Below are positions 2,158 through 59,734 of a stretch of 64,000 bases of DNA, in pieces. The notes under the pieces are model-generated. The model was not told the origin of the DNA. It saw only the letters and a program-made list of their open reading frames with translations, and searched no databases. The stretch comes from Macrostomum lignano (lineage: Eukaryota), in contig NIVC01002101.1 in NCBI GenBank assembly GCA_002269645.1, positions 124,001-188,000 of the forward strand. The letters are read 5' to 3'. The position numbers were made by a program, and so were the translations under genes. How positions within the stretch are numbered: the stretch's first letter is position 1; every line of letters begins with the position of its first letter.

Positions 2158-4039
2158 TTTGAGAAACAGAATGTCATCTAGGGTAGTGGTAATCACCCGT
2201 AGTACGGCTCGTCATCGCTTGCTAGGGGGATGAGAATCAGAACGTAGTGGAAATTGCAAATTTAGAAAGCCATAATCTGATACAGGAGCCAAAATTGATA
2301 AAGCAGGCAACCGAAAGCGCCCCCAGTGAATAGCGGCGAAAGGTCGATTCAACACGATTGTCTACACCGGTAGGCGTGCATGCAGCAGGAATGTGTTAAT
2401 TATCATAAGTTACAGTCTTTGCATTGGGCGCAGCCTGACGCCAGTTACCCCTGGCTTAAATTAACTGCCCCATGCAAATCTGGATCTGCCGGGGACCACG
2501 AGGCCCAAAATCATCTCCGGCCCCAGTTCTCGACCACCCAGCATCCTCATGCTGGACTCTCCATAACGGGATCGCGCTGCGAACCCAGCAAAATGGGATC
2601 TCGTTTTAATGGCATTTTTAAATTATAGCAAAACCAGCGGTTTTAGGCGGCTGGTTTATGATATTTTATATGTACAAGCGTACATGGACGAGGTAGGACA
2701 TTTAAATTCAGCAGAAAGAGAAAACGAATCCGCAGATTATCGTGCACGTACACCTACTAGTTAACTGACTATATGCATGTACGTAAAAATTGTACATTTT
2801 GTACGTTTTGAAAATTGTACGTTTATTCTCAAATGTGCGTTTTGAGAATTGAGGAAGAATTTTCCCACCAAGGTTGTTTGCCCGCGCGAGCTTTTCCCGC
2901 AAGGGGTTTTCCAGTCAGAATGTTAAGTCAAGTAGAAAGCAGACTACTCCAGTTTAACTTTTAAATCACCACGAACGCATCTACTTTCTGCCGTTGAACA
3001 AAATGACCCAATGACTATTTGACAAAAGGGCTATGAAATGTCCAGTCGACGTTCTATTTAGGTTCTTTCAAAAAACACCTGGGCATCATTTTGATAGCGC
3101 GCGTTTATAGCGTTTATAGCGTTGTGCTAGGTTCTTAATAGTTTTTTTTGATTGCCGTTTTTGGTTTGAAAAGTTACTTTTTTACCAAATTTTACTGCAT
3201 CTGTTTTAATGCTGCTTTTTCTATTGTTTTAGCTGGTACTTGTTTTACTTTGACCAAAATTCAAATATTATTGTTTGATACATTTTTGCGCCGGGCCCCT
3301 ATTTCTAAATATACGAATTTAAAGAGCCTTATCCATCGTATTTACTGGTTCATTCTCACACTTACTGCATAAGTTTATAAAAAAGAATAACGTTTTGTAT
3401 TTTATTAAAATTCTCTACATTGCTTTAAATAAACTAAACCATAGATGCGAAAGGAATAGCTCCATTATAGCCATAGACTTGACAGGCCTACTATAAAGTG
3501 CTATATATTTGTGCTTGAATAAAAATAGTTGTACCAGTATATTTGGAAGCCATTGAAATCATAGATTTAGGTTGGCTATATAGTTTTCATGCATTCAAAA
3601 AAATTAAAAGCTTTACACTTAATCTCTGCTAATTGACTAGGCTAAACTATCTGCCAAAACTGCCTGCCAATCTTCAGTTGGTTGGGCTTGATATGGAATC
3701 TAATAATGCAGGCAATCAAGGACAAAATCATTGTGACGATGAGCTAGTAAGTAATCTAATAATAATGACAATGGACAAATATATATTTATATATGTTTTT
3801 TAATATTTTTATTAATAAAGATCTTAAATAATGTTATATTATAGCGTTATAGGGCTAAATGCCAAAATACCAATGGCAATCTTACTATTTCATAGCCTAT
3901 TGTACTTTTCTAAAATCCTATTGAAATAGAATTACCAAAACCTACTGACACAGTAACATTATATAGAGGTACTTCAAAAGGCCATACAAAGATTCTTATA
4001 CAAAAGATTAAAAGAGTAATTTTTATTATTAGAAGCTAG

Positions 4040-4184
4040 TGGATTGTGCGCACCCTGGTGCACTTTAAGCGACATAGGCACACAACTGGCGAGAGGCATT
4101 ATTGCCCATTCCATCGACTCCCTTGAGTAGGCATATAAGTGTGCAGATACGTACACAGGCCCACACTCACATAGGAGTGTACAG
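4040..4184 (-). mobile_element. 3' half of tRNA-derived SINE (family A)
   Basis: Reverse complement aligns to 13010-13160 of the full-length copy. Confidence 0.9.
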
Positions 4185-4192
4185 CTTTATTT

Positions 4193-5770
<1,578 letters not shown>

Positions 5771-5778
5771 CTTTATTT

Positions 5779-5960
5779 TATAATTAGGCATGTACACTTC
5801 ACTGCACATTGGGGGGGGTTGGCTCTCAAGGCTGTTAATTGCACAAGCAGAGCCAAGCCAAGATTCTAATTTAGCCCCAAATTTATGATTGCACTTGGAA
5901 TTGAGCCTAGGTCACTGGCACACTAGAGCCTATGCTAGATTGCTGGGCTATGGCCTCCCT
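5779..5960 (-). mobile_element. 5' half (tRNA head) of SINE family A, heavily C>T mutated
   Basis: Reverse complement aligns to 12816-12990; it is the colinear continuation of the 4040-4184 piece. Confidence 0.9.
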
Positions 5961-7217
5961 TAAAAAAGTAAAGAGTAAAATTACTTTATATGCATATATA
6001 ACTAAGTAAATAGTAGGAATAACCTGGGTTTTTTGGACTGTATAAGGTTTTTTGGCCTCTTGAAAATCTTATTGGCAATTGAAGTTTTGGTATCAGAGGC
6101 CAATCTGGCAACTTTATTTTCCCTATGCCAATTGCCAATTAAAAAATGATTTTATAAGTGTGTTAAATATGCTATATAAATTAATCATATGATGGTATTA
6201 TTAGTTTGTTATTGTTTGCACTATAGAAACCATAGCACCATAGTAATCTTAGAGTTGAGAGAACTAATTTCTGCTATTTAAACTTAGCCTTGGAAATATC
6301 TTCAAGAATTTGTATAGTTGCCAATAAGTAGCTAAAAATAGTCATTAAAACTAGATTTTAGGGTGCTAGTAAATTTATCAACTGGTAACTTCCTCAGCAA
6401 AGTACAGTATGTGCAGCTATCTTAGTACACAGATAATACAGATTTATAAAAGCAATGAGCTAAGCCATGTCATTGTAATGCTAGTTTTTAGGCACAAGAC
6501 ATGACAATTGTTAATTGTGACAATGTCTACCTTACTATTGCCAGATAGGCAGATTGTCTATTGTTGCAGAATGTCTTTTTGGTAGATTGACTAGATAAGA
6601 GACAGCAGCACACTGCAGCACCCAGCAGTCTACCATGTACAACATGATCAAATATAAGATACAATGATGATACAATTAAAACAATGAAACTAAGAATCTT
6701 CCATTTCAATAAGTAGCTAAGGAACTGCAATTAATTGTCAGGATGTCATTGGCAATGGTAAAATCAATTTTAATTCTAATCAGTTTTAATAAATGTAATT
6801 TAATAAAAAAGAATACTTAATTAACTTTGTATGCACATATAAATTGAAGCCTTATTGCTTTTGCTTCTATTTCCATCTCTTGCTTAATACACTTTGTTAT
6901 ATTACATATTAGTTTACGCACTATGCAAACCATGATAAACTTGTCAACATAGTTAATGAATAAAAATATGACAAGTTACCTAGATCTAGATTTTGAGCAC
7001 TAAGGGCCAGCTGGCAACTAGATTTCCAACCTTAAAAAACCTAGGGAATATGATTGTCTTCTTAAAGCTAAGTGCCTTATCATCTAATTAGTAGTACTTC
7101 TATATTCTTTTTGGATAGAAATTTTTGACTTATCCTTGGTCCAATACAATTTTCAGTGGCTAGATTGACCAAGTTAGCTAGCCTAGCAGTCATATAAATA
7201 TACATATGCATTGGTGC

Positions 7218-7655
7218 AATGGAATTGAACACAGCAGGCAAGTAGCTAGTCACATACCAATCAAAGGTCACAGTGCGGCCTTGTTCAACTGGCACTGAAG
7301 CCATGATGCCTCTGGGCTAGAAGAAAATTGCAAACATGATTTTCCCAGCTGACCTCATCCACTTCACCTTTTGGGGAGGTAGGGCTTCTTTGAGTGACCA
7401 AAGCATTGACTGTGATTTAGTTGGCGGGTCATACTGATGGAACTAGGCTTCATCACCTGTGATGATGTTCTGGAAGTTTGCAGATACTCCATCTTTGAAC
7501 TGATCCTGGAAATTTCTGCAAAAATCAATTCTCTGCTGCTTCTGCTCAGGCAAGAGGATTTGTGGTACCCATTTGGCAGCTTTCTTGGTGACACCAAGAT
7601 CTTCATACAAGATCCTCCAAATCAATATGGCATCAATGCCCAGACTCTTCTCCAG
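7218..7655 (-). pseudogene. Mariner (Tc1/mariner) transposase fragment
   Basis: EKSLGIDAILIWRILYEDLGVTKKAAKWVPQILLPEQKQQRIDFC...NIITGDEA*FHQYDPPTKSQS...RSAGKIMFAIF*PRG...GRTVTFDWYVTSYLPAVF. It contains the WVP motif, the TGDE first catalytic Asp and YDP.TK.QS, with in-frame TAG stops. Confidence 0.9.
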
Positions 7656-8140
7656 GCTGATGGTATGCACCATTTCTATATACATGTCTAGCCAAGCTTC
7701 GTCAAACCTAGGCCACGTCTTCAGTACCTTTAAGATGTAGCCTTGCAGGGTGTGGCCACCTGTATAGTAGTTGGTTTGCCACCACATCACTTTGGTTCCT
7801 AGTACCAGGTTAGCTGCTAGGCACATGTGGCCCTGGTCTTTTTCTATTAAATGCTTGGTTGTGTCTCTGCCTGCATCATCAAGCATGCCAGGCGCAGCCT
7901 TGGTTATGACATCACCATCCTCAAGACTGGCCCATCCCAGAGCCACGCAGGAGTACGCAGCAGCAGTTACTAATCCTACCAGCCATGGCACATCAGTGTC
8001 CAGTGCAGCTGTATTAGTCCTCACCCAGTTTGCAGCCCACATGGCTGCCAAGTTGGTATGGGCCTAGGTCAGGTTGGCTAGCTGTGGAAAGCAAAGCTTC
8101 TTGGCAGTTGGAATAGCAGCATCTTGGCCCACAGGTATGG
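7656..8140 (-). pseudogene. Probable endogenous viral element: negative-strand RNA virus nucleoprotein-like fragment (qinvirus/phasmavirus-type motif)
   Basis: About 160 codons with one TAG, including LVLGTKVMWWQTNYYTGGHTLQGYILKVLKT...IEMVHTI. This resembles the TK.NWW..NHH.G...GY..KV...VH.IGHW motif I recall from these nucleoproteins; NYY is explicable as NHH by CAC/CAT>TAC/TAT. The family assignment is from memory and was not searched. Confidence 0.55.
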
Positions 8141-8390
8141 GATTGCACCTTGGGATTGTACACATAAAATCTCTACTACAAGAACACTACTGGTGGCCTC
8201 GGATGGACAAGATGGTAGAATCAAGTGTAGGAACATGCCAAGTCTGCAAGACATCAAAGCCACAGAACAGAAAGTTCCGCATATCATGGCCCAAGCCAGA
8301 TGGCCTATGGACCAGAGTCTATATGAACTTTGCCAGTCCAATTGACAGGCACTACCTACTGGTATTAGTGGATGCCTACTCTAGTTTGGC
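8141..8390 (+). pseudogene. Ty3/Gypsy integrase fragment (H2C2 zinc-binding plus start of rve)
   Basis: HLGIVHIKSLLQEHYWWPRMDKMVESSVGTCQVCKTSK...WPKPDGLWTRVYMNFASPIDRHYLLVLVDAYS. Confidence 0.9.
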
Positions 8391-11300
8391 TGCATTTTAT
8401 TTTCTATTAACCCTCCACCTTTTATTTGTTGGTTAAAGACACAACAATAACAAAATTTTATCATGTTAAAATGAGAGAAACCAATAATAAAATGCATTTT
8501 ACAAGTTGTATACATGAAACAGCAACAAAATGCTTGCCCCTACCATGCAGTAGCCAACAAAGGGGGAATCAGAAAGTATCTCTAGGCCATAGCCCTAAAA
8601 AGTCATACCTGGTCTAATGAGCCAGAATCAGTCAAAGCCTGTTAGTATATGCCATTCACCCTTGGTCTTGCCTACATAGTCCTTGAAACTTGGGTAGCAG
8701 TACAATGTATAGCAGCTCAGGGCAGCAGGCCTCTGAGCAGATGATGTGGCCAGGCAGTCAAAGTTGCTACCTATGCAGTAGGTCAGAAAGCCATATCAGG
8801 TATACCATTGCATAGAGTGCAGTGTTGATCTTGCTGACTGGGTTGCTGCCTCTCCAAAGGCATCTGTCAGGGTCTAGGTCTCAGTGTTATATAGCAAGAC
8901 AATCTGCCTGAAACAGCTTCACTCTGGCCTCTGAGCCCATTATCCAAGGCCTCAAAATGGAGCACAGAGCACATGAATATATATTACAAATAATTGTCAA
9001 ACAAGTTTAACTTAGTTTCAGTATTTAGGTAACCATGGCCCCTCTATTAATAGCCTTAGCTACAAACTATACTACTTTGTCTCTGTCAACTTTTGCCCAT
9101 AAACTATATCTCAAACATTTAACCTTATTAGCTACCACATTAGCATTGAGTGAGTTATGTACTTTTTGCTAATAATTTTCATCTTTTAATGGTAAAGCAA
9201 ACTAAGGATTGGCAAAATCTAGCTTGCAGGCCAAATGTAGCCTAAAGAGCTAAAAACTCAAAAATCTGTTTCTCAGATCCTTTTAAACATTATAATAGTA
9301 ATTCAGCATACTAAAAGTTAATGTCTTCTCTTGGCTCACTTATCTATATAATTTTTTCTCTTATCTCTTTCTTCTCTTTCTATGGGACAAAAAATATAGC
9401 ATAAATTAAAATTATTTGATTAAAATTGTAATTTTGGCAATTAAAAAATTCCAAATGTTATTCTTTTTTAGTACTTCCAATTGTAATAAACATAATTTTT
9501 CTAATTCAATTTTATTAGCTAAAGTCCAATTCCAAAGTGTAGTTAAAGTTTTCTTTTTAAAAACTGTAAATTCTAATAGATTCAACATAAATCTCACTAG
9601 ATAAAAAATCAATATAGTTAAACTTCTTATTAACTTGATAAGTTGGATTGCTATCAAATACCATTATCAGTTCAAAATAACCTGATTTTTTATTATTATA
9701 TATCTGAACATAAATATGGAATAACAATTTACACACATACAAAGCAATAATAAAAAGTATAAAATAGCAACGAAGACAAAGTACAGGATCATATAATACT
9801 TGGCAAATAGTTAAAAAAAAGAAAATAGTCAGAGAAAAATAACAATTTTGTCTTCTCTAAGAGTAGTTTGCATTTTGCAAAAAGAGGTCAAAGAGATGTA
9901 ATGGCATACTTTGAAAGCAGGTCACATCTGCAAGTAAAGGTCAGTAAGAAAATATTAACATATACAATTGTAAAAATACACTTTAATTTAAATAAACAAG
10001 ATAAAGCAAGCAAATGTCAAAGAGATGTAATGACATTCTTTGTGAGCAAGTTAAGTCTACAAGAAATGATAAAAATTAGACTGCTAACATTGGTAGTTTA
10101 AAAAAGTATGTTTAGACTAGTTAAGTTGTAAAACTTTGCATGTATAAGTTCCTAATTCTCATGATATTCTACTGTATACCAAAAGCATTTTAGAAAGCAT
10201 TTTATTACTTCCAATATATCTTTGTACTCAACTAGTGAAAACAACTTTTGCTTGGTAATTCCTATGCTTGATAGCAAGCAACCCTTGAGGGCTTGTTTAC
10301 CATAAACAATGGTGACAAATGTTAGAGCGAATGTCAGTTGTTGGGATCACTATAATTAATTGATTTGAAGTCAACTATTTGTCCAATGTGGTAGGTAAAC
10401 TCAGCTATATTCTCAATTTGAATCGAGTTTGTCACTTCTTGTTTTTTTTCAAAAGCTGCTACTAGTAGCCAATTTGTTTGCTTTTGTTCTCTAAGCAATT
10501 GCTTCATGACATCAGGCATGCTTGTATTGAAGTCAGCTGACTGAATATTGTAGACCTACAATATCTGAAAAGATTAGCAACCCTTTGAGTTTAAGTTGTA
10601 TTTGGCTGAGTATCTCAAAGAGCTTGGCAGCCTCTTAACAAATAAAAATGGTACTAGATGATGCAATTTTTAAAAGTCTCAGTAGCTAGTGGACCAATGT
10701 TAGAACTAGTGCATCTGAGCTTTTATCTGAGTTATCTGTTTAGATAGAATCTTTATGCCATCAAGGTTAATTCATATAACAGTGTCAGTATCTAGAATTT
10801 CTAGGTCCTCCAATGCAGTAGCAAGTAGTTTAGATGCACTTACAAGCTTGACCATAGGACCTTAGGCTAAAAATAGCCTTTTCACTTTCGTTTTTTCTCT
10901 ATTTTCACCTGTTGCCCTTTTTGTTATCTTTGCCTTTGTTTCTAGCAGAATAGATTGCAGTGCAGCAGCATTGTAAGAGAATACTGAAGAGTTGAGCACA
11001 GTTTCAAAACACCATAATAGAAAGAATTCATTGCACAATGGCTTAGTGTGAAAATCTGGTAACTGGTTTGTTGTGAAAAATTTCTAAATCCATTTGCTAT
11101 AAAATAAAATGTAAAAAATTCAACTTGTAGTTAGACATAGGGTCACTGCCTGGAGTCTATAGTGAGTTGTGGAACCATGTCTAAATACAAGAAAAATATT
11201 TTGATGCAACTAATACTAGCAACTAACTTGCAGCCAAATACAATGTCAATTGATCAGTTTTTACAAGTTTTCACAACAATAACAATGTGAAAACAGGGAC

Positions 11301-11522
11301 TTCTATAAGTTTTTCACTAGTTAAAACAAGTCAACAAAGTATAGACTTTGTTGCATTTTAAAATGCAAATCCTGATTGCAATAATTACAGAGAAATTTAT
11401 GTAATACGGATTGTAATTATGGTAATTAATACAAATCTGATACAATGTCATTGGTGATGTATCAGAATCGTATATTCTTATTTAAATTTATACCTAGATG
11501 GAGATGTTGTGGTATTCAAAAA

Positions 11523-14500
11523 ATGAACCAAATCTTCATTACACCACAATGCTCAACTCTGAACTCACAGGACGATCTCGAGAGCCTCCGGCTTGCCGCA
11601 CTAGCCAGCCTGCGTGGCAAAGTCAAACCGGCCGCACCTGCCGCTGCTCCAGTTGCCAAGCCGCCTGTCAGTAGCAAGCCTGCCATTGCTCAGCCTGAGC
11701 AGAAACTCAACAGTATCAAGGCTGCAACTGCTGCCCCTTCAACTGCATCGGCTACAGCTTCAGCTACAGCTTCTGGGCAGAGGTTCGATGCTCGAGCTGG
11801 TAGTTATCAGGTGAGAAATCAGAGAGTTCACACGTCTGACAATTAGAAAGTGCGACCATGTGCAAATGCGTGCCAGTGTACAGTATTGGTGCGTTTCTGT
11901 GTACTGAGCAACTCAAAATTCGCGATCTACCCCAACCCTAATTATTTTCCCTGGTTAAAACTACTGACAGTAGTGTAAAAGCATATTGTCGCGTGTCTAA
12001 TTGAGTCGAGTGCGAAGAAAAACGTAGAGAGCCAGATCATTCAACTGGGCTCTTTATAAGACACGTTTATTTACCCTTATGGACAAGGCTACTGGTTTAG
12101 GCTAGGCTACTGTTTAGGCTACTGGTTTGTTTGCTATGCGTAGGTTGCTCCACCAGGCTTCCTGATTTCCCTAATCCTAGTAGTTAGCGATCAAAGGAAC
12201 AACACAGGAAACCGAAAATAACAATTCCTTTTATTCCAAATATTAGTTAGTTAGTTAAGCAGTTTTAGCGGTGTTAGTTAGCATAGACTACCTTGTAGTG
12301 CACTGTCTTGGCATTGACTACCTTATCGGTATTCCGTGCCCTGCTCCTATCTCCTGTTCCTGTTGGTTCCTGTTTAATTGTCTTCAAAACTGAAACTAAC
12401 ACAGGCGCCCCACTAATCGATACATATAAAGAAACCCAAAATTCGCGATCTACCCCAGCCCTAATTATTTTCCCTGGTTAAAACTACTGAAAGTAGTGTA
12501 AAAGCATACTGTCCCGTGTATAATTCTAACGCTCAATTCTGCCCTACTACTACTACCCTTAGGACAAAAGAAAGGATGGTTGGCCAAGGCTAAGAAGCGT
12601 CCCGCAGTCACTTGTGTCGCCCCAAAGTTGTTTCAGACGCGTTGCAGATCACACAGGTCAAATAGGAAAGAAGTGTTTCTAAACGACAAGATGTCACGAG
12701 ATATCAACTTTTTTCAGCACAAAAATTGTTATTGCTATTCTACGTAGAATAAATATTATTGGTCTATGTACAGTTCGTGTACCTAAATATTATAAAAATG
12801 CATGGTAAAGCTCGAGGGGGGCCGTAGCCCAGCGGTAGCGCAGCTGCTCTGGTGTGCCAGCGACCCAGGCTCGATTCCAAGTGCAGTCACATTAATTTGG
12901 GGCTGAATTGGAATCTCGGCTTGGCTCTGCTCGTGCAATTAACGGCCTTGAGAGCCAACCCCCCCCCAAGGCGCAGTGAAGTGTACATGCCTAACGATAA
13001 TATAAAGTTAGGGCCGCTGTACACTCCTGTGTGAGTGTGTGCCTGCGTACGTATCCGCGCGCTTGTATGCCTGCTCAGGGGAGTCGGCGGAATGGGCAGT
13101 AATGCCTCTCGCCGGTTGTGTGCCTATGTCGCTTAAAGTGCGCCAGGGTGCACACAACCCCCCTGTTTCTTATAAAAATGGCAAAGCTCGACTGATTGGT
13201 TTTATGAATCCATTTTATCACCTTTGTTGAATTATACTGTTACAGATTCAGCTAAGAATGAACAAATAGATTCATAAAACCGATCACAACATAAAATCCT
13301 AATTTTAAAATGGCAAAACATATCAGAAAAGTGGATCTGCTTCCTGTCGAAAGCAATAACAATTTTAATATGGGGCTGGACCTTCTGTCACTGGCCTCAC
13401 GTCACAGCACCAGCTAACAAACTTTCTTATTTATTTATTCCCAGCACAACCGTCGGGCCAACCTGTTGGTGTTGACTCAGCGGCAGCACAGGCCGGGGGA
13501 TGCCAAACCTGCATCGGCTTCGGTGGTTCCGCCAGCTCCCACCACGGCCAGTGGAGCTCCAGTCACCCAGCAGCCGCAGAGACAGCAGCAGCAACAACAA
13601 CAGCCGCAGCAGCCCTTAGCAACTGCGACTCAGCAGCGACTCACAGGACACGGAAAATTTGATCGAATTCGAGACGATGTCGAAGAGGACGATGATGAAG
13701 ATGATGAGGATGCTGAGGATGCTGATAGCGAAGCTCAAAAGAGCAAAGCCGATAGTAAAATCGTCGCCCAAGCCTCGGCGTCGCTGTTGCTAGGCAACGG
13801 ATTCGAGGAGGCGAACCCGCCGCAGCAAAGATCTGGCGCTACGGCGCCGCCAGTGGAATCGGCGCCGTGCACGCTGGACACGGACGAGGAGGAATCGCTG
13901 CTCAGATCGTCGTCGCCTTCGGTGGCCTCCTCAGCCGCTGCGTCGGTTGCCGACGAGAAAGACGAGCAGCCGGTTCAAGAAGAAGCGGATGAGGAGGCAA
14001 AGCAATCCCAAGATGATAAGGCTGAAGCAAAGGAGGATGCTGTGGAGGACGACGAGGAATCCTCAGTAGAAATCTTCAACTCTGTGGACGAGCTCGTCCT
14101 GGACGATTGCACCGACCTGCTGTTCGACGAGCCGCCAGTTGACGCTGCACCCGATGACGCTGCTGCTGCTTCGTCCGCCTCATCATCAGGAGCCAAGCGG
14201 CAGCTGGCCAGGACAGTGTCGCAATCGTCATCGCCTTCAGATCGTCGTCAGTCGTCTGCTAGAAGAAGCCCGCCGCATCAGCGGAAGCAACAACAGCCGC
14301 AACAACAGAAGCAGCAACAACCTCAGCATCAGCAGCATCATCAAGTATTGCATCCGCCTCTGCATCCGCCTCAGCATCCGCCAATACAGCCTCATCAGCG
14401 TTCTATGCCGCCGCAGGCGATGCAGATCAATCAGTCGTTTCGGCCGCCTGTGTTTATCAACCAGGCTGGCTATCCTATGCAGCAGATGGCACCGCAGCAG

Positions 14501-15421
14501 CATCCTCAGCAGCATCCTCAACTGTATCAGCCTCCGCATCCGTCATTCGCTCCTGTTTCGGTCGGGGCTGGTGCCGGTTTCCCGAATCCGGCTGCCGCTT
14601 TGATGATGCCACACCATCAGCAGCTTCAGAACTATCATCATCATCTTCCTCAGCATCCTCAGCAGCAGCAGCCGCCACTGCCGCCGATGTCTTTGCCGTT
14701 GCAGTTGTCGTCAGCTTCAACGGCGCCGTCTTCCTCGGCTTCTGCTGCTGTTGCTGCTGTTGCTGTGTCTTCGGCGGCTTCGGTTCCGGCTGCTGCTTCA
14801 GCGGCGGCGGCAGGCAGTTCCGTGGGCGAGCCGCCCCGAATGTCGCGTTCCCGCTCGAGCTCGAGCTCGTCGGCCTCGATCTCTGCAGCCGACCGGCGCA
14901 AGAAGAAGCGCCGACGGCAGCCGCGCGAGCATCGGCGCAGCCGGAGCCGCAGTCGCGGTCGCTCCGGTCGGTCTCGACATCGTCGCGCCGTGTCGGCCGA
15001 CTCGGCAAATTCTGCCTCGTCGTCGGTCGCTTCGTCGTCTTCGCCGCAGCAGCAGCAGCGACGCAGTAAATTGGCGCCGACCTCAATGGTGTCGGTGGTG
15101 ACGGCCGGCAAGCGGACTGCGGCAGCCGCGGCATCGACAGCTGCTGCTGCGACGGCTCAGCAACCGACGTCTTCGTCTGAGCGCAAAGCCAAGAAGCAGC
15201 GCCGCCAGCATTCCAAGCAGAAGCGGCACAAGCATCGGCACCGGAAGCGTCGGCAGCAGCGCGAAGGCTCCGCCTCGGTAGTTTCGTCGCCGACTGGCGG
15301 AGTTGCCGCTGGCATCGGCGGCAGCGGCGGCGACTCCCCTGGCAGCAGTCGGTCGAACGAGGATCTGCGCAACTTCCTTATCAAACGACGGAATGACGCA
15401 ATCAGCCAGTTGGCGCTGTGA
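11523..15421 (+). CDS. Low-complexity basic/RS-rich putative nuclear protein; exons 11523(or 11571)-11810 and 13445-15421
   Basis: Phase-0 join CAG|GTGAGA (11811) to TTCCCAG|CAC (13445) keeps the frame: ...DDLESLRLAALASLR...GSYQ|HNRRANLLVLTQ... Acidic, poly-Q/P, RS and KR-rich tracts follow, ending EDLRNFLIKRRN...L*. The start is uncertain: ATG 11523, or an acceptor at 11570 with an unidentified upstream exon. Confidence 0.75.
11914..12525. repeat. Pair of ~88-bp direct repeats (11914-12002 and 12437-12525) in an intron
   Basis: CAAAATTCGCGATCTACCCC(A/G)...GTAGTGTAAAAGCATA...TAATT occurs twice with few mismatches. Confidence 0.85.
12816..13177 (+). mobile_element. Full-length tRNA-derived SINE (family A) with target-site duplication
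   Basis: A-box TAGCCCAGCGG and B-box GGCTCGATTCC; flanked by ATGG(T/C)AAAGCTCGA (12802-12815 and 13178-13191); homologous pieces at 4040, 5779 and 35342. Confidence 0.9.
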
Positions 15422-22400: not shown

Positions 22401-25400
22401 AAAGTGCACGGCAAAGATACTGGATTTATGTTTATGAGTTATTTTGGACCGGTTCAATACAGGTGTTATGGATCTGAGACAGGTGATTTGTCATCTGAGA
22501 CAGGTGATTTGTCATCTGAGACAGGTGATTTGTCATCTGAGACAGGTGATTAGGGATCTGAGACAGGTGATTAGAGATCTAAAAATGGTGATTAGAGATC
22601 TGAGATAGGTGATTAGGGATATGAGACAGGGGATTAGGGATCTGAGAGAGGTGATTAGAGACCTGAGACAGGTGATTATGGATCTGAGACAGGTGATTAG
22701 GGATCTGAGACAGGTGATTATGGATCTGAGACAGGTGATTAGGGATCTGAGACAGGTGTATGGATCTGAGACAGGTGATTATGGATCTGAGACAGGTGAT
22801 TATGGATCTGAGACAGGTGATTAGGGATCTGAGACAGGTGATTAGGGATCTGAGACAGGTGATTAGGGATCTGAGACAGGTGATTATGGATCTGAGACAG
22901 GTGATTAGGGATCTGAGACAGGTGATTAGGGATCTGAGACAGGTGATTATGGATCTGAGACAGGTGAATATGGATCTGAGACAGGTGATTATGGATCTGA
23001 GACAGGTGATTATGGATCTGAGACAGGTGATTATGGATCTGAGACAGGTGATTATGGATCTGAGACAGGTGATTAGGGATCTGAGACAGGTGATTATGGA
23101 TCTGAGACAGGTGATTAGGGATCTGAGACAGGTGATTAGGGATCTGAGACAGGTGATTAGGGATCTGAGACAGGTGATTATGGATCTGAGACAGGTGATT
23201 AGGGATCTGAGACAGGTGATTATGGATCTGAGACAGGTGATTAGGGATCTGAGACAGGTGATTAGGGATCTGAGACAGGTGATTAGGGATCTGAGACAGG
23301 TGATTAGAGATCTAAAAATGGTGATTAGAGATCTGAGACAGGGGATTAGGGATCTGAGAGAGGTGATTATGGATCTGAGATAGGTGATTAGGGATATGAG
23401 ACAGGTGATTAGGGATCTGAGACAGGTGATTAGGGATCTGAGACAGGTGATTAGGGATCTGAGACAGGTGATTATGGATCTGAGACAGGTGATTAGGGAT
23501 CTGAGACAGGTGATTAGGGATCTGAGACAGGTGATTAGGGATCTGAGACAGGTGATTATGGATCTGAGACAGGTGATTAGGGATCTGAGACAGGTGATTA
23601 GAGATCTAAAAATGGTGATTAGAGATCTGAGATAGGTGATTAGGGATATGAGACAGGGGATTAGGGATCTGAGAGAGGTGATTATGGATCTGAGATAGGT
23701 GATTAGGGATATGAGACAGGTGATTAGAGATCTGAGACAGGTGATTAGGGATCTGAGACAGGTGATTAGGGATCTGAGACAGGTGATTATGGATCTGAGA
23801 CAGGTGGTTATGGATCTGAGACAGGTGATTAGGGATCTGAGACAGGTGTATGGATCTGAGACAGGTGATTATGGATCTGAGACAGGTGATTAGGGATCTG
23901 AGACAGGTGATTAGGGATCTGAGACAGGTGATTAGGGATCTGAGACAGGTGATTAGGGATCTGAGACAGGTGATTATGGATCTGAGACAGGTGATTAGGG
24001 ATCTGAGACAGGTGATTAGGGATCTGAGACAGGTGATTATGGATCTGAGACAGGTGATTAGGGATCTGAGACAGGTGATTAGAGATTTAAGACAGGTTTA
24101 GAAGCAGGTTGTCTGATTTGGAATATTCAACTAAGACTCGGAGGCATGGATCTTATGTAGGATTGCATAAAAAAATATCTAAACATAACGGCCACTCCAG
24201 CCTCACCATCATCCGTGAGAATCTCCATCTCTGTCCTGTTAATTCTGAGCATCTCCTTGAAGGTTAGCACGCACATTGATACCATTATCGGAGCCTGCAA
24301 AGTGCGGTGCTGCGAATTGCAATTTCAAACCAAAAATTTGAACTTGAAATTTCTTAAATTTCTCACCTGAAAAGCGGCGATCACAAAGAAGGGGTATCGA
24401 ACTCGGGACAGCACTGATTCCAGCTCGTCGTCCACTGTGTACACTGTGGCCGAGGACACCTCGCGAGCTGCCGGAGGTGCAGCAGCCGCCGCGGCCTCCG
24501 CCTCAGGCAGGGTGCAGTTCAGCCACTCGTGCGGCGCCGGGTGAGACAGGAAAGCGCCGATGATGAGGGGCGACACGAAGGCGCCCAGGCTCTGGCAGAA
24601 GAACATGGCCTGCAGGAATGGCCCGGCTTGGCTTCTGTAGAGCTGCAGCAGCTGCGCGTTGCAGAAGAACTCCAGGCAGCCCTCCAGCAGCCCCATGGCG
24701 CTGAAGGCGAAGGCCAGGCCGGTGAGGCTGCGACACAGCGGCACCAGCAGGAAGCAGCAGGGCATCAGGGTGGCCACCATCAGCAGCAGCAGGTGGACTC
24801 CCAGCCTGCCGGGTGCATCAGCGAGACAGGAATCTATTGTTCAGGCTCTTTAAATAGTCAGCTGAGTAGCCTGGGTCCTTTATGACGGAGCAGCTCTGCT
24901 GGTGTAAACGCGTCTAGCCTGACTCTGGTTGATTCCGCTAAATTTATCCCTCCAAAGCACAGACAGTGTACATGCCTGGACGATTAGAGAGTCACAAGAG
25001 AGAGTACAGGTGTTAATGCACTTGTAATTTGCTCAGGAGACGGCTCACCTTCATGCAACTCTCATAAGTTATAAGATAAGTATGCATACACACGCTCACA
25101 CAGGGTGTGGAAAACTCAAGTAGAAGAGGAGACAACTACGGTTTCTTGGAAAACTTTTAAGATCAGGCAGGATTTACCGAAAATAGTGCATTCCGGAGAT
25201 GAAGGTTTTCATTTTTTGAGCACAAACATTGTAATTGCCTTCAGTAGGAGGCAGGTCCAGTGTTCTCAGCAACATTGAAAAGTCGCCATCACAGTGGATT
25301 CCGTCTGTGGTCGCCACATTTGAGAGTGCAGGTAAAGTCTCTCAATCTTTGCGAGTGACGCAACTAAGCTAGTTGGGGAATGAAGTGGGGTGGGCTTTGT

Positions 25401-35190: not shown

Positions 35191-35341
35191 CAAACAGTAA
35201 AGGAAAAAAACACGATGGATTTTTCTTTCTAACATGACTTAATATGACTATTGATGCACAATATACTTTCCGCGGATGCACCCGCGGACAGCAAGCTGCT
35301 TGCTGTCTGCTGGGGGATGCTTGCTAAAGAGTTACCTAATT

Positions 35342-35421
35342 AATGTGGCTGCACTTGGAATCGAGCCTGGGTCGCGGCACACAAGAGCAGCTGCGCTACC
35401 GCTGGGCTACGGCCCCCCCCC
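35342..35421 (-). mobile_element. SINE family A head only (CpGs intact)
   Basis: Reverse complement aligns to 12816-12895. Confidence 0.85.
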
Positions 35422-35698: not shown

Positions 35699-37078
35699 GA
35701 AGGAGTAGGGTGGGTAGAGTAGAGAGCGGATTCTGAACGGGATAAGAGGAGGCGGTATAAAGGTCGTGTCAACATATTGTGCACCACGTGTCATTTTCTA
35801 TTTTTGCTTTTGATATAAATAAATCTAGTGAAAATGCTCGTATTTACGCTCGCACGCTCGCAATGTTGTTTTATTGTGCACAAAACATGGAGCTTTGTTT
35901 TTTAATCATTTTTTACTTTAGGCTGGAGCGGAGATAAGCGGAGGTGGATCGTTGGTGGCTAGATGGGCAGTTGGGTGGCTAGGTGGGGAGTTGTGTGGCT
36001 AGGTGGGGAGTTGGGTGGCTAGATGGGCAGTTGGGTGGCTAGGTGGGGAGTTGGGTGGCTAGGTGGGCAGTTGGGTGGCTAGGTGGGCAGTTGGGTGGCT
36101 AGGTGGGGAGTTGGGTGGCTAGGTGGGCAGTTGGGTGGCTAGGTGGGGAGTTGTGTGGCTAGGTGGGGAGTTGGGTGGCTAGGTGGGCAGTTGGGTGGCT
36201 AGGTGGGGAGTTGGGTGGCTAGGTGGGCAGTTGGGTGGCTAGGTGGGGAGTTGGGTGGCTAGGTGGGCAGTTGGGTGGCTAGATGGGCAGTTGGGTGGCT
36301 AGGTGGGGAGTTGGGTGGCTAGGTGGGCAGTTGGGTGGCTAGATGGGGAGTTGGGTGGCTAGGTGGGCAGTTGGGTGGCTAGGTGGGGAGTTGGGTGGCT
36401 AGGCGGGGAGTTGTGTGGCTAGGTGGGGAGTTGACTAGATGTTGGCTAGTTTTTTATTTTTTGTGGGATAATCATTTCTGTTCACAAAATGATTCCAGGG
36501 CTGTCTATTGTCGCGCCAGTCTGCTACTGAGCTGGCAGAAGTTGAGTGGTGCCCCTTGCACCATTTAAGCTGCTGCCAAAATTTGCTGGCCAATACGTGC
36601 CGTAGGAAACATTGTCCAAGAGACAATGATTTCTACGCAATCTGCAATAGGCAAGGCTGCTTTTGGGGGCAAAATTCATGGTGCGAGGGGCCAGTTGTGC
36701 CAGCTCCAGCGCCAGCTCCCCGCTGTTCCGCTGGCAAGGTGCCGAGCCTTGCCACGCTGGCCAGTCTGGCAACACGCAGCAGCGGCCCGCCGCCACTGCA
36801 CTTGTGCAGTTGTGGTTTGGGAAAGGTCTTGGTCACTGACCTGTAAAAACGTGATCCCTTCTGAACGTTAAAACGGCCCTTTTCAGGGCCACCAAATTCG
36901 CGATTCTTGCGTTTAGTCAACTCTTTTAACTCCGCCATTGCCGGTCCCCAGCCCGGATGAAAAAGGAGGAGGGAAAGAAAATATACACATGCTCACGTTC
37001 GTGTCACTGTTTTTCTGTTTTCTGTTTTGATAAAACTGTCTTGCCATTTTCCACTTGAAATGTTTCATTATGCTTTTT
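35699..37078 (+). repeat. Left arm of a large inverted duplication, containing a 20-bp array (GGTGGG(G/C)AGTTGGGTGGCTA, ~24 copies)
   Basis: Near-identical reverse complement of 48646-50467 from GAAGGAGTAGGGTGGG to CATTATGCTTTTTG. Confidence 0.92.
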
Positions 37079-39119
37079 GGACTTCTTCAAGTTTATGCTG
37101 ATAAAATAGTTGCAATTTTGATAGGATCATAATTTTGTCTCTATAGGGGTTTTTGATGGTGCTGATTTCAAATTTGAGATCCATTTTTGGTAGCTTTAAC
37201 CCAATTATATGTAGCTTAAAACCAACCACCGGGGCATGGGGAATGGGGGTTTTAGGGTGGGGAGATTCTTCATGGGGATTGATTTTATCAACATAAACTT
37301 GAATAGAGGCATGGAGACCTATTCAAGATTGTGTTGATTTATTCCCATCCTAATAGCTAAATCACCTAGACCGACAGGTGCGGGCTCGATTGTTTCAGCA
37401 CCCATGCCTTCTGGGCCTGCCTGAAGATAATCCTCCACCTTCATATTGGTCCTGTTGCTGCTGCTGCAAAGTTTGGATTTGGATTTGAATTTGGCTAACC
37501 GAATTCACACAGAAGTTCGAAGCTCGCAGGCTAATCACGAAGGATAATCCATATCTTAGCCTTCGTGATAAGATATTCATTGGTTTAATAAGCAGCTTCG
37601 GCTACTACAAGTAGCAATAACGAAACCTACTAGTACTCACAAAACACAAAACATTTTTCAGCCTCCATTTTACGCCTCTATTTTTTAAACTAAACTAGAA
37701 AGTAATTGTATAACACAGATAGACACACATTTCGGCAGCCAGAGTCAAAATAAAGTAAAATTCAACATCGCACTTGGAGCAAAACTTATTATTTATTATT
37801 ATTGACAATTTCTGGGTGCTGATTTTTTTATTTTTCAATAAATGGTTCACGAAAACATTTAGGACTGCCGAGAAAAAAATTGGACTACCGATCCAATACT
37901 GGAGTCTTTACAGTAGAAACTCCAATACTGGAGTTTCGATTTTGCAACAGCAAAAAGTGCAAATAACTTTTCTGGACGACCTTCTGGCGCGCTGGGACCG
38001 GCGCCATATTCGACTCGGGTTGCCGAAATCTATAAGAACATGTTGTTCGCATAGCGTGAAAACCACTCTGCAAAATGCCAAATTGCCGACTGCAAATTGT
38101 AATCCAGGTCCACTTCTCAAATTCACGCCAGACCAAGCTGCTCATGGTAAAGATTCTGCAAGTAGTCAGGTGCTCCCGCAACCTCCAACTAATCAAAACT
38201 ACCCGAGCCGCTGAGCAGTTTAGCATTGCACTGAGAGCTAAACTGGACTACCGATCTAATACTGGAGTCCTTACAGTAGAAACTCCAATACTGGAGTCGT
38301 ATTGGAGATTAATGTAGAAGTATGTACTGCGTACATATACAATTTGGGATAGACATGTACAGCTACAATTTGGGATTAATGTACATATACGAGTACATGA
38401 GTTATTGTACATGGGATTAATGTACATATACGATGTGAGCTATACATAATTAGATGACTCATTTGGTAGTAGATGAGATTGTAGTACACTAATTCTCGCC
38501 CCTGCGTACAACTGTACATGTAAGTATTGTTTTGAGTTGTACATGTAATCTTGGTACGCGTGCGGGCCGGCTGGGGAGGACACTGTTACATGTAGAAGTA
38601 GATTAATGTAGATCACCAGGGCCGGAATCATGGCCAGATCATGGATGATCCATGCATTGCACCCATCCATGCATCATCCCTGATCATGTATGGACCGATC
38701 CTTGTTCATAGATGGTTTCATGCTCATTCCATGGATGGCAGAATAGCCATACATGATCATCGATGTATTACTTTCCATACATGGACATGTATGATTGTTA
38801 ATTCTGGCTGTATATACTACTCGTTAAGGCACATTTGAGTTTTAAAGAAATAACTCAAAGAACTATAGCTCAAACTAGCCATTTAGCCCCTTCCGGGTGG
38901 CTTCTTAGCAGTTTAGGGCTTGTCTATAAGCAGTTTTGCACAGTCGCTGAGCAAGTCTCACTAATCTCCGAGCAGTTCTGCAGTAGCAAATTTCTAAGCA
39001 GTTTCACACCAATTTTACTGAGACTAAAAAGTTCTAAAAAGTTACATTTCTTAATGTTTGAAACTGCAATTTCAATTCATTTATAGTTCTTTTATGATTA
39101 TTAGTTATTTTTAAATCCT

Positions 39120-44269: not shown

Positions 44270-45622
44270 AGAGATTTTGTGCAGTTGGGCCACGCCTCTG
44301 CAGCCGACGCCGATCCCCGCGGGCGCCTGGCTGTCGATCGGCGCCGATTTCGTGGGACCCAACAACAACAACATGCTGCTGGTGTGCGTGGACCGCTACT
44401 CAAGGTTTCCGGAGGTGCAGCTCATGCAGACGACGACGGCCGAGGCATTGATTCCCCGCCTGCGAGAGATGTTCGCCCGCTTCGGGATGCCACAGGAGCT
44501 CGTGACAGATAATGGACCACCTTTCTCGTCCAAGGAGTTCGGCCGGTTCCTGGCGAGCTACGGGATCAAGCACCGCCTCATCACGCCCTACTACCCAGCG
44601 GCCAACGGCATGACAGAGCGACTGAACCGCTCCATCAACAAAGTCGTGCGAGCAGCCATCGAGGAGCGGCGGGACTGGAGGGCCGCTCTGGACGAGTGGC
44701 TGCTGGCCTACAGAAACACGCCGCACACGGCCACCGGGCGCGCACCAGCCGAGCTGCTGATGGGCCGGCGGCCAAACGACATCATCCCCGCCGCCCGGCC
44801 GTCCCAGCGAGTCCGCATCAACGAGCAGCGGCTGAGAGAAGCCGACGCTGGCGCCAAGGCGGCGATGAAGCAGCACGCGGACGCAAAAAGGCGACCACGG
44901 CGGCACGACGTCCAGGTCGGCGACTCGGTGCTACGACGGCGGGTCGGTGCCAGCAAGACGCAGACGCCATTCGAGAGCGGTGCCTGGACAGTCCAGCGGG
45001 TGGCCGGCAACTCGCTGCTGCTACGCCGGGACGGCACGACCTGCTGGCGGCACTGCACGGCGGTCAAAGTCGTCAGCCCCGACTTGGCCGACGCCGGCGC
45101 CCAAACGCAGACCGCTGCACCGAGAGCTTCGGGCGAGGCGGCCCGAGATCCACCCGCCTCCCCCGTGGCGCTGCGCCCGCACCCCCGCGCTGCTCAGGCG
45201 GGCGTGAAAATCTACAAGGACTGAATTTGGAATCCTGCAATGACTGAAATTAACTGACTTTCTTTTCCGTAATATGCGGACTGAAGTTTTTTTTACGTTT
45301 TTGCTGCATTCAATTCAAATATTTTATTTCCTCAATATTTTAATCTCCATTTTCAATGCGCATCATCGGTGAATCTTTCGAACTTTGTATTTTCGAGTTA
45401 CGTTTAAATCGATTTTCTTCTCTCTCAGTCTCTATTCGAAAGGGGAGAGATGTAGTGTGCGTACGCACAGTATGGTACGCCCGGGCAGTCTGATTGGCTG
45501 CGGAGTGGGGTGGATGCCGCCACCCCAATTCTAACTCCATAATATATAGACGCGTGCCCAGTGCGGGAGATTTGTAAGAGTTTGGCTACACAGCAAACAC
45601 GGTCTCTGACTCAGTTACTACA
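44270..45622 (+). mobile_element. 5'-truncated Ty3/Gypsy LTR retrotransposon: integrase, PPT and putative 3' LTR
   Basis: Open ORF 44277-45224 with DFVGP...VDRYSRFP...TDNGPPF...TPYYPAANGMTER (DDE). PPT AAAGGGGAGAGA ends at 45450; candidate LTR TGTAGT(45451)...ACTACA(45622). Confidence 0.9.
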
Positions 45623-46354: not shown

Positions 46355-47670
46355 GGGGGGGAGCGGCGGAAAGCAGCGGAGCTGTTGGGGGAGCGGCGGA
46401 AAGCAGCGGAGCTGTTGGGGGGAGCGGCGGAATGCAGCGGAGCTGTTGGGGGGAGCGGCGGAAAGCAGCGGAGCTGTTGGGGGGAGCGGCGGAAAGCAGC
46501 GGAGCTGTTGGGGGAGCGGCGGAAAGCAGCGGAGCTGTTGGAGGAAGCGGCGGAAAGCAGCGGAGCTGTTGGGGGAGCGGCGGAATGCAGCGGAGCTGTT
46601 GGGGGGAGCGGCGGAATGCAGCGGAGCTGTTGGGGGAGCGGCGGAAAGCAGCGGAGCTGTTGGTGGAAGCAGCGGAGCTGTTGGGGGAGCGGCGGAAAGC
46701 AGCGGAGCTGTTGGTGGAAGCAGCGGAGCTGTTGGGGGAGCGGCGGAAAGCAGCGGAGCTGTTGGGGGGAGCGGCGGAAAGCAGCGGAGCTGTTGGGGGA
46801 GCGGCGGAATGCAGCGGAGCTGTTGGGGGAGCGGCGGAAAGCAGCGGAGCTGTTGGGGGAGCGGCGGAAAGCAGCGGAGCTGTTGGGGGGAGCGGCGGAA
46901 AGCAGCGGAGCTGTTGGGGGGAGCGGCGGAATGCAGCGGAGCTGTTGGGGGAGCGGCGGAAAGCAGCGGAGCTGTTGGGGGAGCGGCGGAATGCAGCGGA
47001 GCTGTTGGTGGAAGCAGCGGAGCTGTTGGGGGGAGCGGCGGAAAGCAGCGGAGCTGTTGGGGGGAGCGGCGGAATGCAGCGGAGCTGTTGGGGGGAGCGG
47101 CGGAAAGCAGCGGAGCTGTTGGGGGAGCGGCGGAATGCAGCGGAGCTGTTGGGGGAGCGGCGGAATGCAGCGGAGCTGTTGGTGGAAGCAGCGGAGCTGT
47201 TGGGGGGGAGCGGCGGAATGCAGCGGAGCTGTTGGGGGGAGCGGCGGAATGCAGCGGAGCTGTTGGGGGGAGCGGCGGAATGCAGCGGAGCTGTTGGGGG
47301 AGCGGCGGAAAGCAGCGGAGCTGTTGGTGGAAGCAGCGGAGCTGTTGGGGGAGCGGCGGAAAGCAGCGGAGCTGTTGGGGGGAGCGGCGGAAAGCAGCGG
47401 AGCTGTTGGGGGAGCGGCGGAAAGCAGCGGAGCTGTTGGTGGAAGCAGCGGAGCTGTTGGGGAGCGGCGGAAAGCAGCGGAGCTGTTGGGGAGCGGCGGA
47501 AAGCAGCGGAGCTGTTGGGGAGCGGCGGAATGCAGCGGAGCTGTTGGGGGGAGCGGCGGAAAGCAGCGGAGCTGTTGGGGGGAGCGGCGGAATGCAGCGG
47601 AGCTGTTGGGGGGAGCGGCGGAATGCAGCGGAGCTGTTGGGGGGAGCGGCGGAATGCAGCGGAGCTGTTG
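46355..47670. repeat. ~31-bp G-rich minisatellite (GGAGCGGCGGA(A/T)AGCAGCGGAGCTGTTG(G)n-type) with a variable G-run
   Basis: Direct units with no stop codons in several frames, which explains the long spurious ORFs. Confidence 0.97.
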
Positions 47671-48645
47671 GTTTGATAACAGCTGACGAGGCTGACAGGC
47701 TTATTTGCATAGAGCGATGCTATGAGAATGAATTCAGTCAGTCAGTTTAAAGCAGAAAGCTGGCTCTGCCTCTGCCTACCCTTCAACTGAATCGAGTGAA
47801 CTCGCAGTGCCGAAGTGCCCAAAGTTGGTTCTACATGTACGTATTGTTTTGGCAAACTGGATTACAAAAAGGTACGGCTCATATATTACAGTGTATATAC
47901 TACATGTATTTGAGTGGCGAATTGGTGACGGTTTAAATGTTGCTAGGGCTATACGTGTATGTGACCCGTCCGGTGCTCTACTACCTTGAATTCATGCCCG
48001 TAAAGCTCAGCCTCCGATCATTTACTAAATATTTACTGTCGCGAAAGGGGACTCTCAGTCCCCAACATCCTGCATGGTATTAGGGGGCCTAGGGTCTTGT
48101 CCTTGGGGCCTTCGACAAGTGACTGCCGCAATTTGACTGGGGACTATGAACTCTAAACATTGGCACCTCAAGATTAGAGCGGCGGCACTCGAACCAAAAT
48201 AATGTTGAAGGACTACAGAAAACATGTATATCATAAAATAGAGAGCTAAATAAGTTGGCCAGTTGAAACAGTGGTTTGGTATAATGGGCTGAAACAAAGC
48301 AAATAAATTGTTAAACTACTATAATACGAGCTACTTTAATTTTGTCATGGAAACTGATTTAGAAACAACTAAAAAGATTTTGAATAATATGAGACAAAAT
48401 ATTTGTAACTTTTTTTAAGATATACAGCTACCACAACTTAACTGAAATTTCTACAGTTTTGATTAGTTGTAAGTTGCGGGAGCACCTGGCTTTACTTACA
48501 GACACTGTAGGGTGTCTGCCAGCGTGTCTGACACTGCTCTATAGGGTGTTTGTAAGCGTGCTTTGGAGGCTTTTGCACGATTGTTGCCTTCCTAGGCTTA
48601 CAACGTTTATTAGGTTTACAACGTAATGCGGAAAATAGGAAAGAC

Positions 48646-50467: not shown

Positions 50468-51198
50468 CGTTGGAAAAGTTATGCACCTGCAGAGGCACAA
50501 AAGGTGAGCGAGGTGCACAAAAGAGGCACTTTGGTGGCCTATTTCGTGTGTGTTTTCGTGTGTGTGCGAGAAGACCCTTGTGAAGAAGATCATGTGAAGT
50601 TAATTCAATCATGTGAAGTTAATTTCGTGGAAATGATCTAAACTATGGCGGCTGCTGCAGTAATCAGTTTTGATATGAGTCAGTTGGATTTTCTTACACT
50701 GTTAACTGAGTTATACATGTGTGTCTCATCGCTTTGTTCTTATATTAGCATATATGTGCAATAGCAGTCATTGCAGTATTTTATTGAATTATATGCTTGC
50801 TGAAACTACTGAATGGCAGGCATATAACCGTTCCTGCAGCAGCGAATGCAATGACACACGCGGTGGGCAGGCTCCAACTAAATGGGATCTAAACAGGTGT
50901 CGGGGACTCGAGAACTCGACGGAAGAAGTGCAGCGAACCCCCCCCCCCCAACATGCACAAAGAGGCACCCCGGCTGCACGTGGGAACCCCTGGCCTGGAC
51001 CGACACAGTCAAAATGGACTGTATTTATACAGTGGCAGATAAAACAGCGCACGAATGTGCTGGGGTACATGTACGTGACGTCACTGAGCTGCGTGTAATG
51101 TAGTGTTACACATGAATACTAGAACTTATTAATAAAAGGAATATTGTCTGGCCTTAAACTGCTTAATCCAAATGAAAAGAAATGCAGTCCAACTAAAC

Positions 51199-56875: not shown

Positions 56876-57134
56876 TACATCTGTGCCTCAGAGAGGTTCG
56901 TGTTGAGACTCGTGTCCCAATTCTTGCAGACGCGACCTGCTCTTCAAAGCGTGCCGAATTCTCTCCCTGTCCTAATTCTCAGGGAGTAATGTACTTAAAA
57001 TTGTCGCTTGTTTTATGTTGAAGTGCTAGTTTAATTAGCTAAGCTTTACCTCCTTCGCTTGTTTCAATAAAGAGGCTCTAGATACTGAAGCGAGTCCTGC
57101 ATCACCTGAGACCAGTCTATCTACGCATACCTAC

Positions 57135-59458: not shown

Positions 59459-59734
59459 AACTACTTTTAAGAAGTTCATAACTAAACATGACTATTTGAC
59501 ATAATTTTTTATGTAATGTCCCATTCCCTAGAAAATGAGTTAACACAGTGATTTTTTGTGCTTTTTAATTTTAGGCCTCAAATTGCAGCTTATGAAGGTA
59601 CATGTCCCTATTGCAGCCAAGGTCTGAACCGCGCCGGACGCCCCCCTTTCCCGCGCCAGACATCTACCTGTACCGCGCCAGGGCCAGTCCCCAGGATCAG
59701 TGATTTGGTTCAATTAGTCAGTCAATGGCTCGCA

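Follow-up and report, generated by a model that had tools for sequence, protein, structure and literature searches.

In fungi, repeat-induced point mutation (RIP) consumes CpA and TpG dinucleotides and yields TpA, and the thresholds used to recognise it are a (CpA+TpG)/(ApC+GpT) of 1.03 or less (Margolin/Selker) and a TpA/ApT above 0.89. Among invertebrates, mosaic germline CpG methylation is described from Ciona, oyster and annelids, and in some of these animals transposable elements (TEs) are methylated as well. The flatworm Macrostomum lignano, a regeneration and stem-cell model, retains DNMT1 and DNMT3 (PMC11292947, PMC9246332, PMC10658182), unlike planarians and parasitic flatworms, in which both have been lost, and its global level of 5-methylcytosine (5mC) is low according to the passages of these papers that cite Wasik et al. 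2015. Here we describe a CpG-depleted block in a stretch of 64,000 nucleotides from this species (assembly GCA_002269645.1, contig NIVC01002101.1, positions 124,001 to 188,000 of the forward strand; hereafter the window, in which all positions are counted). Host exons of the window match M. lignano proteins at 99%, 90% and 90% identity, and the contig agrees with 47121-64000 at 100% identity. The block is an intergenic heap of nested old TE fragments, among them a split short interspersed element (SINE), a terminal inverted repeat (TIR) element, a mariner-like remnant and a Gypsy integrase fragment. We infer, with a probability of about 70%, that this CpG desert is the footprint of long-standing local germline CpG methylation; the sequence feature is real and the explanation is an ordinary one.

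The observed to expected ratio (o/e) of CpG was calculated as the number of CpGs over the count expected from base composition. The DNA surveyed amounts to about 160 kb, made up of the window and four other M. lignano loci with tandem repeats masked, and 64 non-tandem M. lignano windows with a GC fraction below 0.46 were used as controls. The core of the block contains 17 CpGs against 189 expected, giving an o/e of 0.09 at a GC content of 35.6%, compared to 0.83 in the controls (p=5e-8). TpG/CpA is raised reciprocally, to an o/e of 1.28-1.31 in the block against 1.12 in the controls (p=8e-4). The features on which these comparisons draw are as follows.

5445..11400, no strand: core CpG-free block, set by CpG o/e and base composition
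3400..4022, no strand: AT-rich left part of the interval first described, 3 CpGs against 13 expected, o/e 0.23
4023..4185, minus strand: tail half of a split copy of the SINE family SINE-A, SINE positions 202-364, placed by alignment to the intact copy, 7 of 11 reference CpGs lost
4193..5770, no strand: TIR element, 1578 bp long, that interrupts the SINE-A copy, recognised from direct and inverted repeats
5216..5444, no strand: perfect microsatellite (AT)15(AG)98 within the TIR element, apparently marking where the fully CpG-free core starts on the left
5771..5960, minus strand: head half of the split SINE-A copy, SINE positions 1-193, with a tRNA-like head, placed by alignment, 10 of 10 reference CpGs lost
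12815..13178, plus strand: intact SINE-A copy in intron 1 of the adjoining gene, used as the reference, 22 CpGs, o/e 0.76
35335..35418, minus strand: fragment of a SINE-A head with 95% identity to the intact copy, CpGs retained

A preliminary description of this DNA had proposed a domain of about 8 kb, from 3400 to 11400, in which CpG is nearly absent and returns abruptly near an exon at 11.5 kb. The depletion is real over the whole of this interval (o/e 0.19), and on the right the recovery is indeed abrupt, falling at 11.4-11.6 kb and leading to values of 0.62 in the 5′ end and exon 1 of the adjoining gene, 0.77 in intron 1 and 1.11 in exon 2; in the left flank (2400-3399) the o/e is 1.10. 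The domain is not uniform, however, as the ratio is 0.23 at 3400-4022, 0.52 in the SINE-A tail, 0.65 and 0.38 in the parts of the TIR element to the left and right of the microsatellite, and 0.09 in the core. All TE fragments in the core lie at 0.00-0.14 regardless of their family or GC content, the block being AT-rich (GC 22-46%). The position of the (AT)15(AG)98 microsatellite coincides exactly with the drop of CpG density to zero. Low CpG o/e, a gain of TpG/CpA and CpG-normal flanks, the signature of methylation decay, are all found here.

Such deserts are uncommon, yet not unique, as the roughly 160 kb of M. lignano DNA contains just one other non-tandem example, L003:1-1500 (locus L003, contig NIVC01001102.1). 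The second block lies upstream of a ribosomal protein S18 gene, is AT-rich (GC 27%) with 0 CpGs, and runs on past the end of the locus; its CAG+CTG o/e is 0.89, against about 1.4 in ordinary non-coding DNA.

The loss of CpGs in place can be followed in SINE-A, by means of one 353-bp alignment of the split copy with a single reference copy located 7 kb away. Relative to the intact copy, the split insertion has lost 17 of 21 CpGs, and 15 of these 17 became TG or CA; the CpG changes are symmetric between the strands, with eight on each. The head had been credited with nine lost CpGs, and a recount gave ten out of ten. As the intact copy keeps 22 CpGs, the loss took place where the split copy now lies, and the head fragment at 35335-35418, which agrees with the intact copy, bears out the earlier remark that a SINE head near 35342 keeps its CpGs. 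The proposal of a localised germline process acting in place on a repeat-rich block is in this respect upheld. CpG loss outpaced C>T change at non-CpG sites 8-20-fold.

A second, weak case of loss in place is provided by the TIR element, which lies between two copies of an 8-bp direct repeat, CTTTATTT (4185-4192 and 5771-5778), and has terminal repeats of the GTCACTTCGG type. Its terminal and subterminal inverted repeats read CACTTCGG on the left and, in decayed form, CACTTTGG/CACTTTAG on the right.

Across the SINE-A alignment there are 48 mismatches, 32 of which are C>T or G>A and 14 of which are transversions, so that the statement that nearly all differences are C>T or G>A was too strong. 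At non-CpG sites C>T (16/157) exceeds T>C (2/151; p=0.001), consistent with AT-biased decay when the reference copy itself is almost unmutated. A metagenome scan for further SINE-A copies with a degenerate 23-mer gave 0 matches, and other M. lignano loci (about 95 kb) yielded only one partial match of 82 bp, from which no true consensus can be built; sensitive blastn and tblastx searches of the block against all M. lignano DNA compared returned no further repeats. The tRNA-like head of SINE-A was called by eye from its A and B boxes, and neither ARAGORN nor Rfam reported a tRNA or RNA family anywhere in the window.

A second tRNA-headed SINE family of about 300 bp, SINE-B, has at least four independent insertions in the approximately 160 kb, at the sites listed here.

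Window 57480-57760: SINE-B
Locus L002, 10757-11023: SINE-B
Locus L004, 905-1089, 14231-14523 and 19872-20105: SINE-B
Loci L003 and L005: duplicates of SINE-B sites

All SINE-B insertions lie in CpG-normal DNA; they have a CpG o/e of 0.46-0.66, and CpG is changed at 3 of 67 sites. C>T change at CHH sites (IUPAC code, here and below) amounts to 4.5% in the split SINE-A copy and 3.4% in four SINE-B insertions, and T>C change to 1.3% and 1.8% respectively. Because the two families match in these classes, the excess of CpG loss in SINE-A is specific to its context and is not an effect of age. Ordinary M. lignano loci that are present in duplicate, with 164 unpolarised transitions, point the same way. 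In these (C/T)pG is not hypermutable, at 7.5/kb against 4.0-8.4/kb for other contexts, and the commonest class is (C/T)pA, at 8.4/kb against 4.0-7.5/kb. Since ordinary DNA of this species is without CpG hypermutability, the CpG-specific process is a local one.

Among the duplicated sequences is a PTB-like gene (window 57143-58483) with two more copies, at L002:9927-11400 and L003:9906-11343. Over 8.7 kb these two share 98% identity, their identity to the window is 87-90%, and their neighbouring genes differ, which is consistent with a recent large-scale duplication in the M. lignano genome. The homeologous comparison with L002 and L003 covers the PTB-like gene at 57.7-58.4 kb only.

Long-term germline CpG methylation is the best explanation of these observations, because the process is local and the host has both DNMT1 and DNMT3. 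The block would have been CpG-methylated in the germline over a long time, and spontaneous deamination of 5mC would have converted nearly every CpG to TpG or CpA. The adjacent promoter, exons and intron, and most of the genome, would have remained unmethylated and would thus have kept their CpGs. The TIR element, being younger and having landed in SINE-A, may have decayed only partly, and the remaining substitutions would represent ordinary AT-biased decay. With both methyltransferases and low-level 5mC present in M. lignano, the suggestion that no such process has been described in animals of this kind went too far.

Several points weigh against an account in terms of CpG methylation. It leaves two signals unexplained, namely the clustering of SINE-A changes at CHG sites and the enrichment of CTA/TAG and CTAG in the block. 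Loss in place is seen only in the SINE and, weakly, in the TIR pair, and the CpG poverty of the mariner-like and other remnants could in part have been inherited. Finally, the left boundary is not statistically sharp, whether judged by CpG loss in the SINE-A head and tail (10/10 and 7/11) or by the TIR motif, in which 3/3 were lost on the right and 1/4 on the left.

The remaining features of the block and the adjoining gene are as follows.

7080..8051, minus strand: mariner-like transposase remnant of 323 codons, identified through Pfam and relatives
8074..8436, plus strand: Ty3/Gypsy-type integrase fragment with an H2C2 zinc-binding domain (PF17921, E=9e-12)
10200..10950, minus strand: degenerate open frame with many stops, from the open reading frame (ORF) listing
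11523..11810, plus strand: predicted exon 1 of a Ser/Arg-rich low-complexity gene, ATG at 11523, donor CAG/GTGAGA at 11810/11811
13445..15421, plus strand: predicted exon 2 of the Ser/Arg-rich gene, acceptor at 13445, stop at 15421

The mariner-like remnant is a single reading frame with two internal stops and no frameshift, a CpG o/e of 0.14 and a TpG/CpA o/e of 1.5. An initial search with its translation gave no match, and the Pfam match to Transposase_1 (E=0.0099) is below the gathering score; an exhaustive search of representatives gave 3259 relatives, the best of which are 50-51% identical, and the mariner motifs HHDNA..PYSPDLAP are present. The preliminary description had reported TGG>TAG stops in the TE remnants, and one of these is supported, at codon 203, where 85% of the relatives have W. 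Inference of ancestral bases at the codon level was uninformative for this remnant, as 36 of 45 deviating conserved columns are multi-step changes or transversions. AT-rich unclassified DNA separates the Gypsy integrase fragment from the degenerate frame at 10200-10950; the latter has no Pfam match and is probably another TE remnant. As no more than about 150 bp lie between the end of the block and the predicted gene start, the block is most simply the upstream intergenic region of that gene. The two-exon model itself is a prediction from the sequence, and none of four start variants looked up in the protein collection was present there.

The non-CpG signal in the block sits at CHG, or CWG, sites and not at CpA in general. 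CTA/TAG had been described as enriched, and it is, at 44/kb in the block against 31/kb in the controls (p=2e-4; p=0.001 after adjustment for GC). It is the sole enriched trinucleotide that contains TpA (1.39x, against 0.96-1.07x for the others). CTAG occurs at 6.7/kb against 2.8/kb in the controls, and its 2.7x enrichment is spread across all fragments of the block. In SINE-A, the non-CpG C>T changes fall at 11 of 45 CHG sites and 5 of 111 CHH sites (Fisher p=0.0006; one copy, 16 events). The CHG changes comprise CAG 5/18, CTG 4/18 and CCG 2/9, and the CHH sites include CAC 0/19, CCA 0/12 and CTC 0/13. The excess of CHG over CHH is present in each half of the element (6/21 against 2/48, and 5/24 against 3/63).

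A local process acting at CG and CHG sites, mainly CWG, would account for this pattern, either through non-CpG methylation or through a context-specific deaminase, with CAG>TAG and CTG>TTG raised alongside CpG decay. We consider it unlikely. Apart from the SINE-A counts, it is favoured by the enrichment of its expected products, CTA/TAG and CTAG, over the other TpA trinucleotides, and by the lack of a CHG excess in the controls: in SINE-B copies CHG is changed at 1/143 sites and CHH at 9/262, and in the duplicated loci YWG and YHH stand at 6.9/kb and 5.9/kb. The pattern was, however, recognised post hoc in 16 events from one alignment to a single reference copy, and its details do not suit such a process well. 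The CHG events are strand-asymmetric, with 9/24 antisense to the SINE RNA and 2/21 on the other strand, unlike symmetric CHG methylation; both CCG events are tandem changes beside a decayed CpG; and the tail of SINE-A, the less CpG-depleted half, has CHG events as often as the head. Across the block CAG+CTG is not depleted (o/e 1.5 against about 1.4 in the controls), and the mariner-like remnant is CWG-rich. The two windows with the most CTA/TAG in all M. lignano DNA compared (12001 and 43001) are CpG-normal, and other diverged TE pairs also have a mild YHG excess, of at most about 2x. The wider proposal, that TE-rich blocks of M. lignano undergo germline deamination at CG and CHG/CWG sites, by plant-like CG and CHG methylation or a CWG-preferring DNA deaminase, and so become CpG-free, CTAG-rich islands, is accordingly doubtful.

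Three further ideas about these sites were set aside. Double decay of CpG to TpA as the source of CTAG was rejected, as GTAC, TTAA and ATAT (from GCGC, TCGA and ACGT) are not enriched. Dcm-type methylation at CCWGG was rejected, as one of eight clean CWG events lies within CCWGG. A trinucleotide mass balance, in which loss of CCG/CGG was set against gains of CAG/CTG, CCA/TGG and CTA/TAG, was inconsistent for want of the TE fragments' original composition, and it was rejected as a test.

The non-CpG changes in SINE-A may instead date from copying, with decay through CpG methylation superimposed later. They would then stem from deamination of first-strand complementary DNA (cDNA), from adenosine-to-inosine (A-to-I) editing of the RNA that was the source of the younger copies, or from differences between subfamilies. 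The polarity of the changes agrees with this, as non-CpG C>T is mostly antisense to the SINE RNA (12 against 4, as well as the CHG counts above), which is what cDNA editing, or A>G editing in the lineage of the reference, would be expected to produce. The non-CpG changes are also equal in the two halves of the element although their CpG loss differs, and the block as a whole is without strand bias (TAG/CTA 135/128, TTG/CAA 170/169) or CWG depletion. The bias of 12 to 4 is borderline, however, with about as many sites on either strand; the base 5′ of the changed C varies (A 7, C 5, G 2, T 1), and there is neither the TC/CC motif of the known APOBEC3 enzymes nor a WRC motif; and the enrichment of CTA/TAG and CTAG throughout the block is left unexplained. 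An origin at copying is therefore only a slim prospect, and a single 353-bp alignment of SINE-A is too little to tell CWG methylation, editing of cDNA or RNA, and subfamily differences apart.

It is improbable that no local process exists, and that the block is simply older or its TE families CpG-poor and AT-rich from the start. The AT-richness of the block would agree with age or AT drift, as would the 16 to 2 ratio of C>T to T>C at non-CpG sites in SINE-A, and for most of the fragments a CpG-poor ancestral consensus is conceivable. Drift does not explain why CpGs in SINE-A were lost so much faster than other C>T sites while its CHH and T>C changes match those of SINE-B, or why ordinary M. 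lignano DNA shows no decay of CpG with divergence. The mariner-like remnant, moreover, has only its two internal stops and no frameshift, and yet a CpG o/e of 0.14.

The preliminary description had interpreted the block as the product of RIP-like hypermutation at CpA. The C>T changes at CpA that it counted in SINE-A, five in the head and three more in the tail, were found again and are similar in frequency in the two halves (5/27 and 3/27). Taken together, CpA>TpA at 8/54 is not significantly above C>T at CpC and CpT at 8/103 (Fisher p=0.18), and (C/T)pA is already the top class in duplicated DNA, so that the outcome which the preliminary description itself had named as refuting it, a CpA>TpA rate no higher than that of other non-CpG transitions, is essentially what is observed. 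The substrate index (CpA+TpG)/(ApC+GpT) is 1.45 when pooled (mean 1.44) against 1.24 in the controls, which is further from RIP than ordinary DNA, and neither TpA/ApT (1.00 against 0.93, p=0.17) nor TpA o/e (0.89 against 0.82, p=0.10; p=0.45 after GC adjustment) is significantly raised. In RIP all duplicate copies are mutated, and here the SINE-A copies at 12815-13178 and 35335-35418 are untouched. The block falls outside the RIP family, as three defining features were tested and found to be absent. A Neurospora-like mutator that makes C>T changes at CpA in repeats is therefore very improbable: the TpA/ApT of the block does exceed the fungal threshold (as do the controls), and there are the eight CpA>TpA changes and one TGG>TAG stop, but CpA/TpG is enriched and not consumed, CAC is unchanged at all 19 sites, the mariner-like ORF has just two stops in 323 codons, and the main target is CpG.

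Elsewhere in the window, about 29% of the sequence (18,583 bases) is taken up by minisatellite and microsatellite arrays, whose units measure 2-166 bases; several arrays (22459-24097, 51196-54854) are CpG-free because the repeat unit contains no CpG. An inverted duplication at 35699-37079 and 48645-50444 has arms that are 95-99% identical, each with a 20-bp minisatellite array, and may be a foldback-type or long-TIR element. The arms bracket about 12 kb, in which a Gypsy-type integrase ORF (44277-45224, GC 62%, CpG o/e about 1) occurs together with long minisatellites rich in GC. On the minus strand, 59735-62330 holds three long open frames of 264, 165 and 125 amino acids with normal CpG content; these look transposase-like by eye only and have no significant Pfam match, and in the 21-kb locus L001, which covers this region, only the PTB-like gene was called. 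At 62692-63870 about 192 TAGCCC units form an array that grades into proline/alanine-like repeats of 16-22 bp and continues past the end of the window into L001.

If CpG methylation is the correct explanation, the small amount of 5mC in M. lignano would be concentrated on a few discrete blocks, and would have been present there for long enough to rewrite them. The pattern resembles the targeting of TEs or heterochromatin and not gene-body methylation. Its interest is moderate, because the block predicts where the scarce 5mC of this animal sits; the CHG-biased changes would matter more if true genome-wide, and so far come from a single SINE copy.

Of the known systems, APOBEC-type editing of retroelement cDNA in vertebrates, which gives G>A on the sense strand, shares with SINE-A the excess of C>T antisense to the SINE RNA and the effect on the whole copy. 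It differs in that SINE-A has no 5′ TC/CC motif and prefers targets with a G at the second base on the 3′ side, and its bias is borderline. Non-CpG methylation of the DNMT3 type (mCAG/mCAC in mammals) and plant CHG methylation by CMT3 share the clustering of changes at CAG, CTG and CCG in SINE-A and the enrichment of TAG/CTA and CTAG in the block. Here, in contrast, the changes are strand-asymmetric and come from a single SINE copy, CWG is undepleted across the block, and CTG was changed as often as CAG, unlike in mammalian mCAG methylation; we know of no chromomethylase in animals. With fungal RIP the block has in common a decay of repeats dominated by C>T and G>A, some TpA-creating changes and a TAG stop, but CpG is the main target here, CpA/TpG is enriched, sister copies are unmutated and stops are few. 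The mosaic germline methylation of invertebrates shares the sharply bounded CpG depletion with TpG/CpA gain beside CpG-normal DNA, the strand-symmetric decay, and a host with DNMT1 and DNMT3. Compared with that system, methylation is in this case deduced from sequence, and the depletion is near-total while CpG hypermutability is absent from the ordinary DNA of this genome. The arrangement is also the opposite of classical gene-body methylation, as it is the intergenic TE block that is depleted and the adjoining gene body that is CpG-normal, and the closer likeness for the M. lignano block is therefore the TE-directed methylation of some invertebrates.

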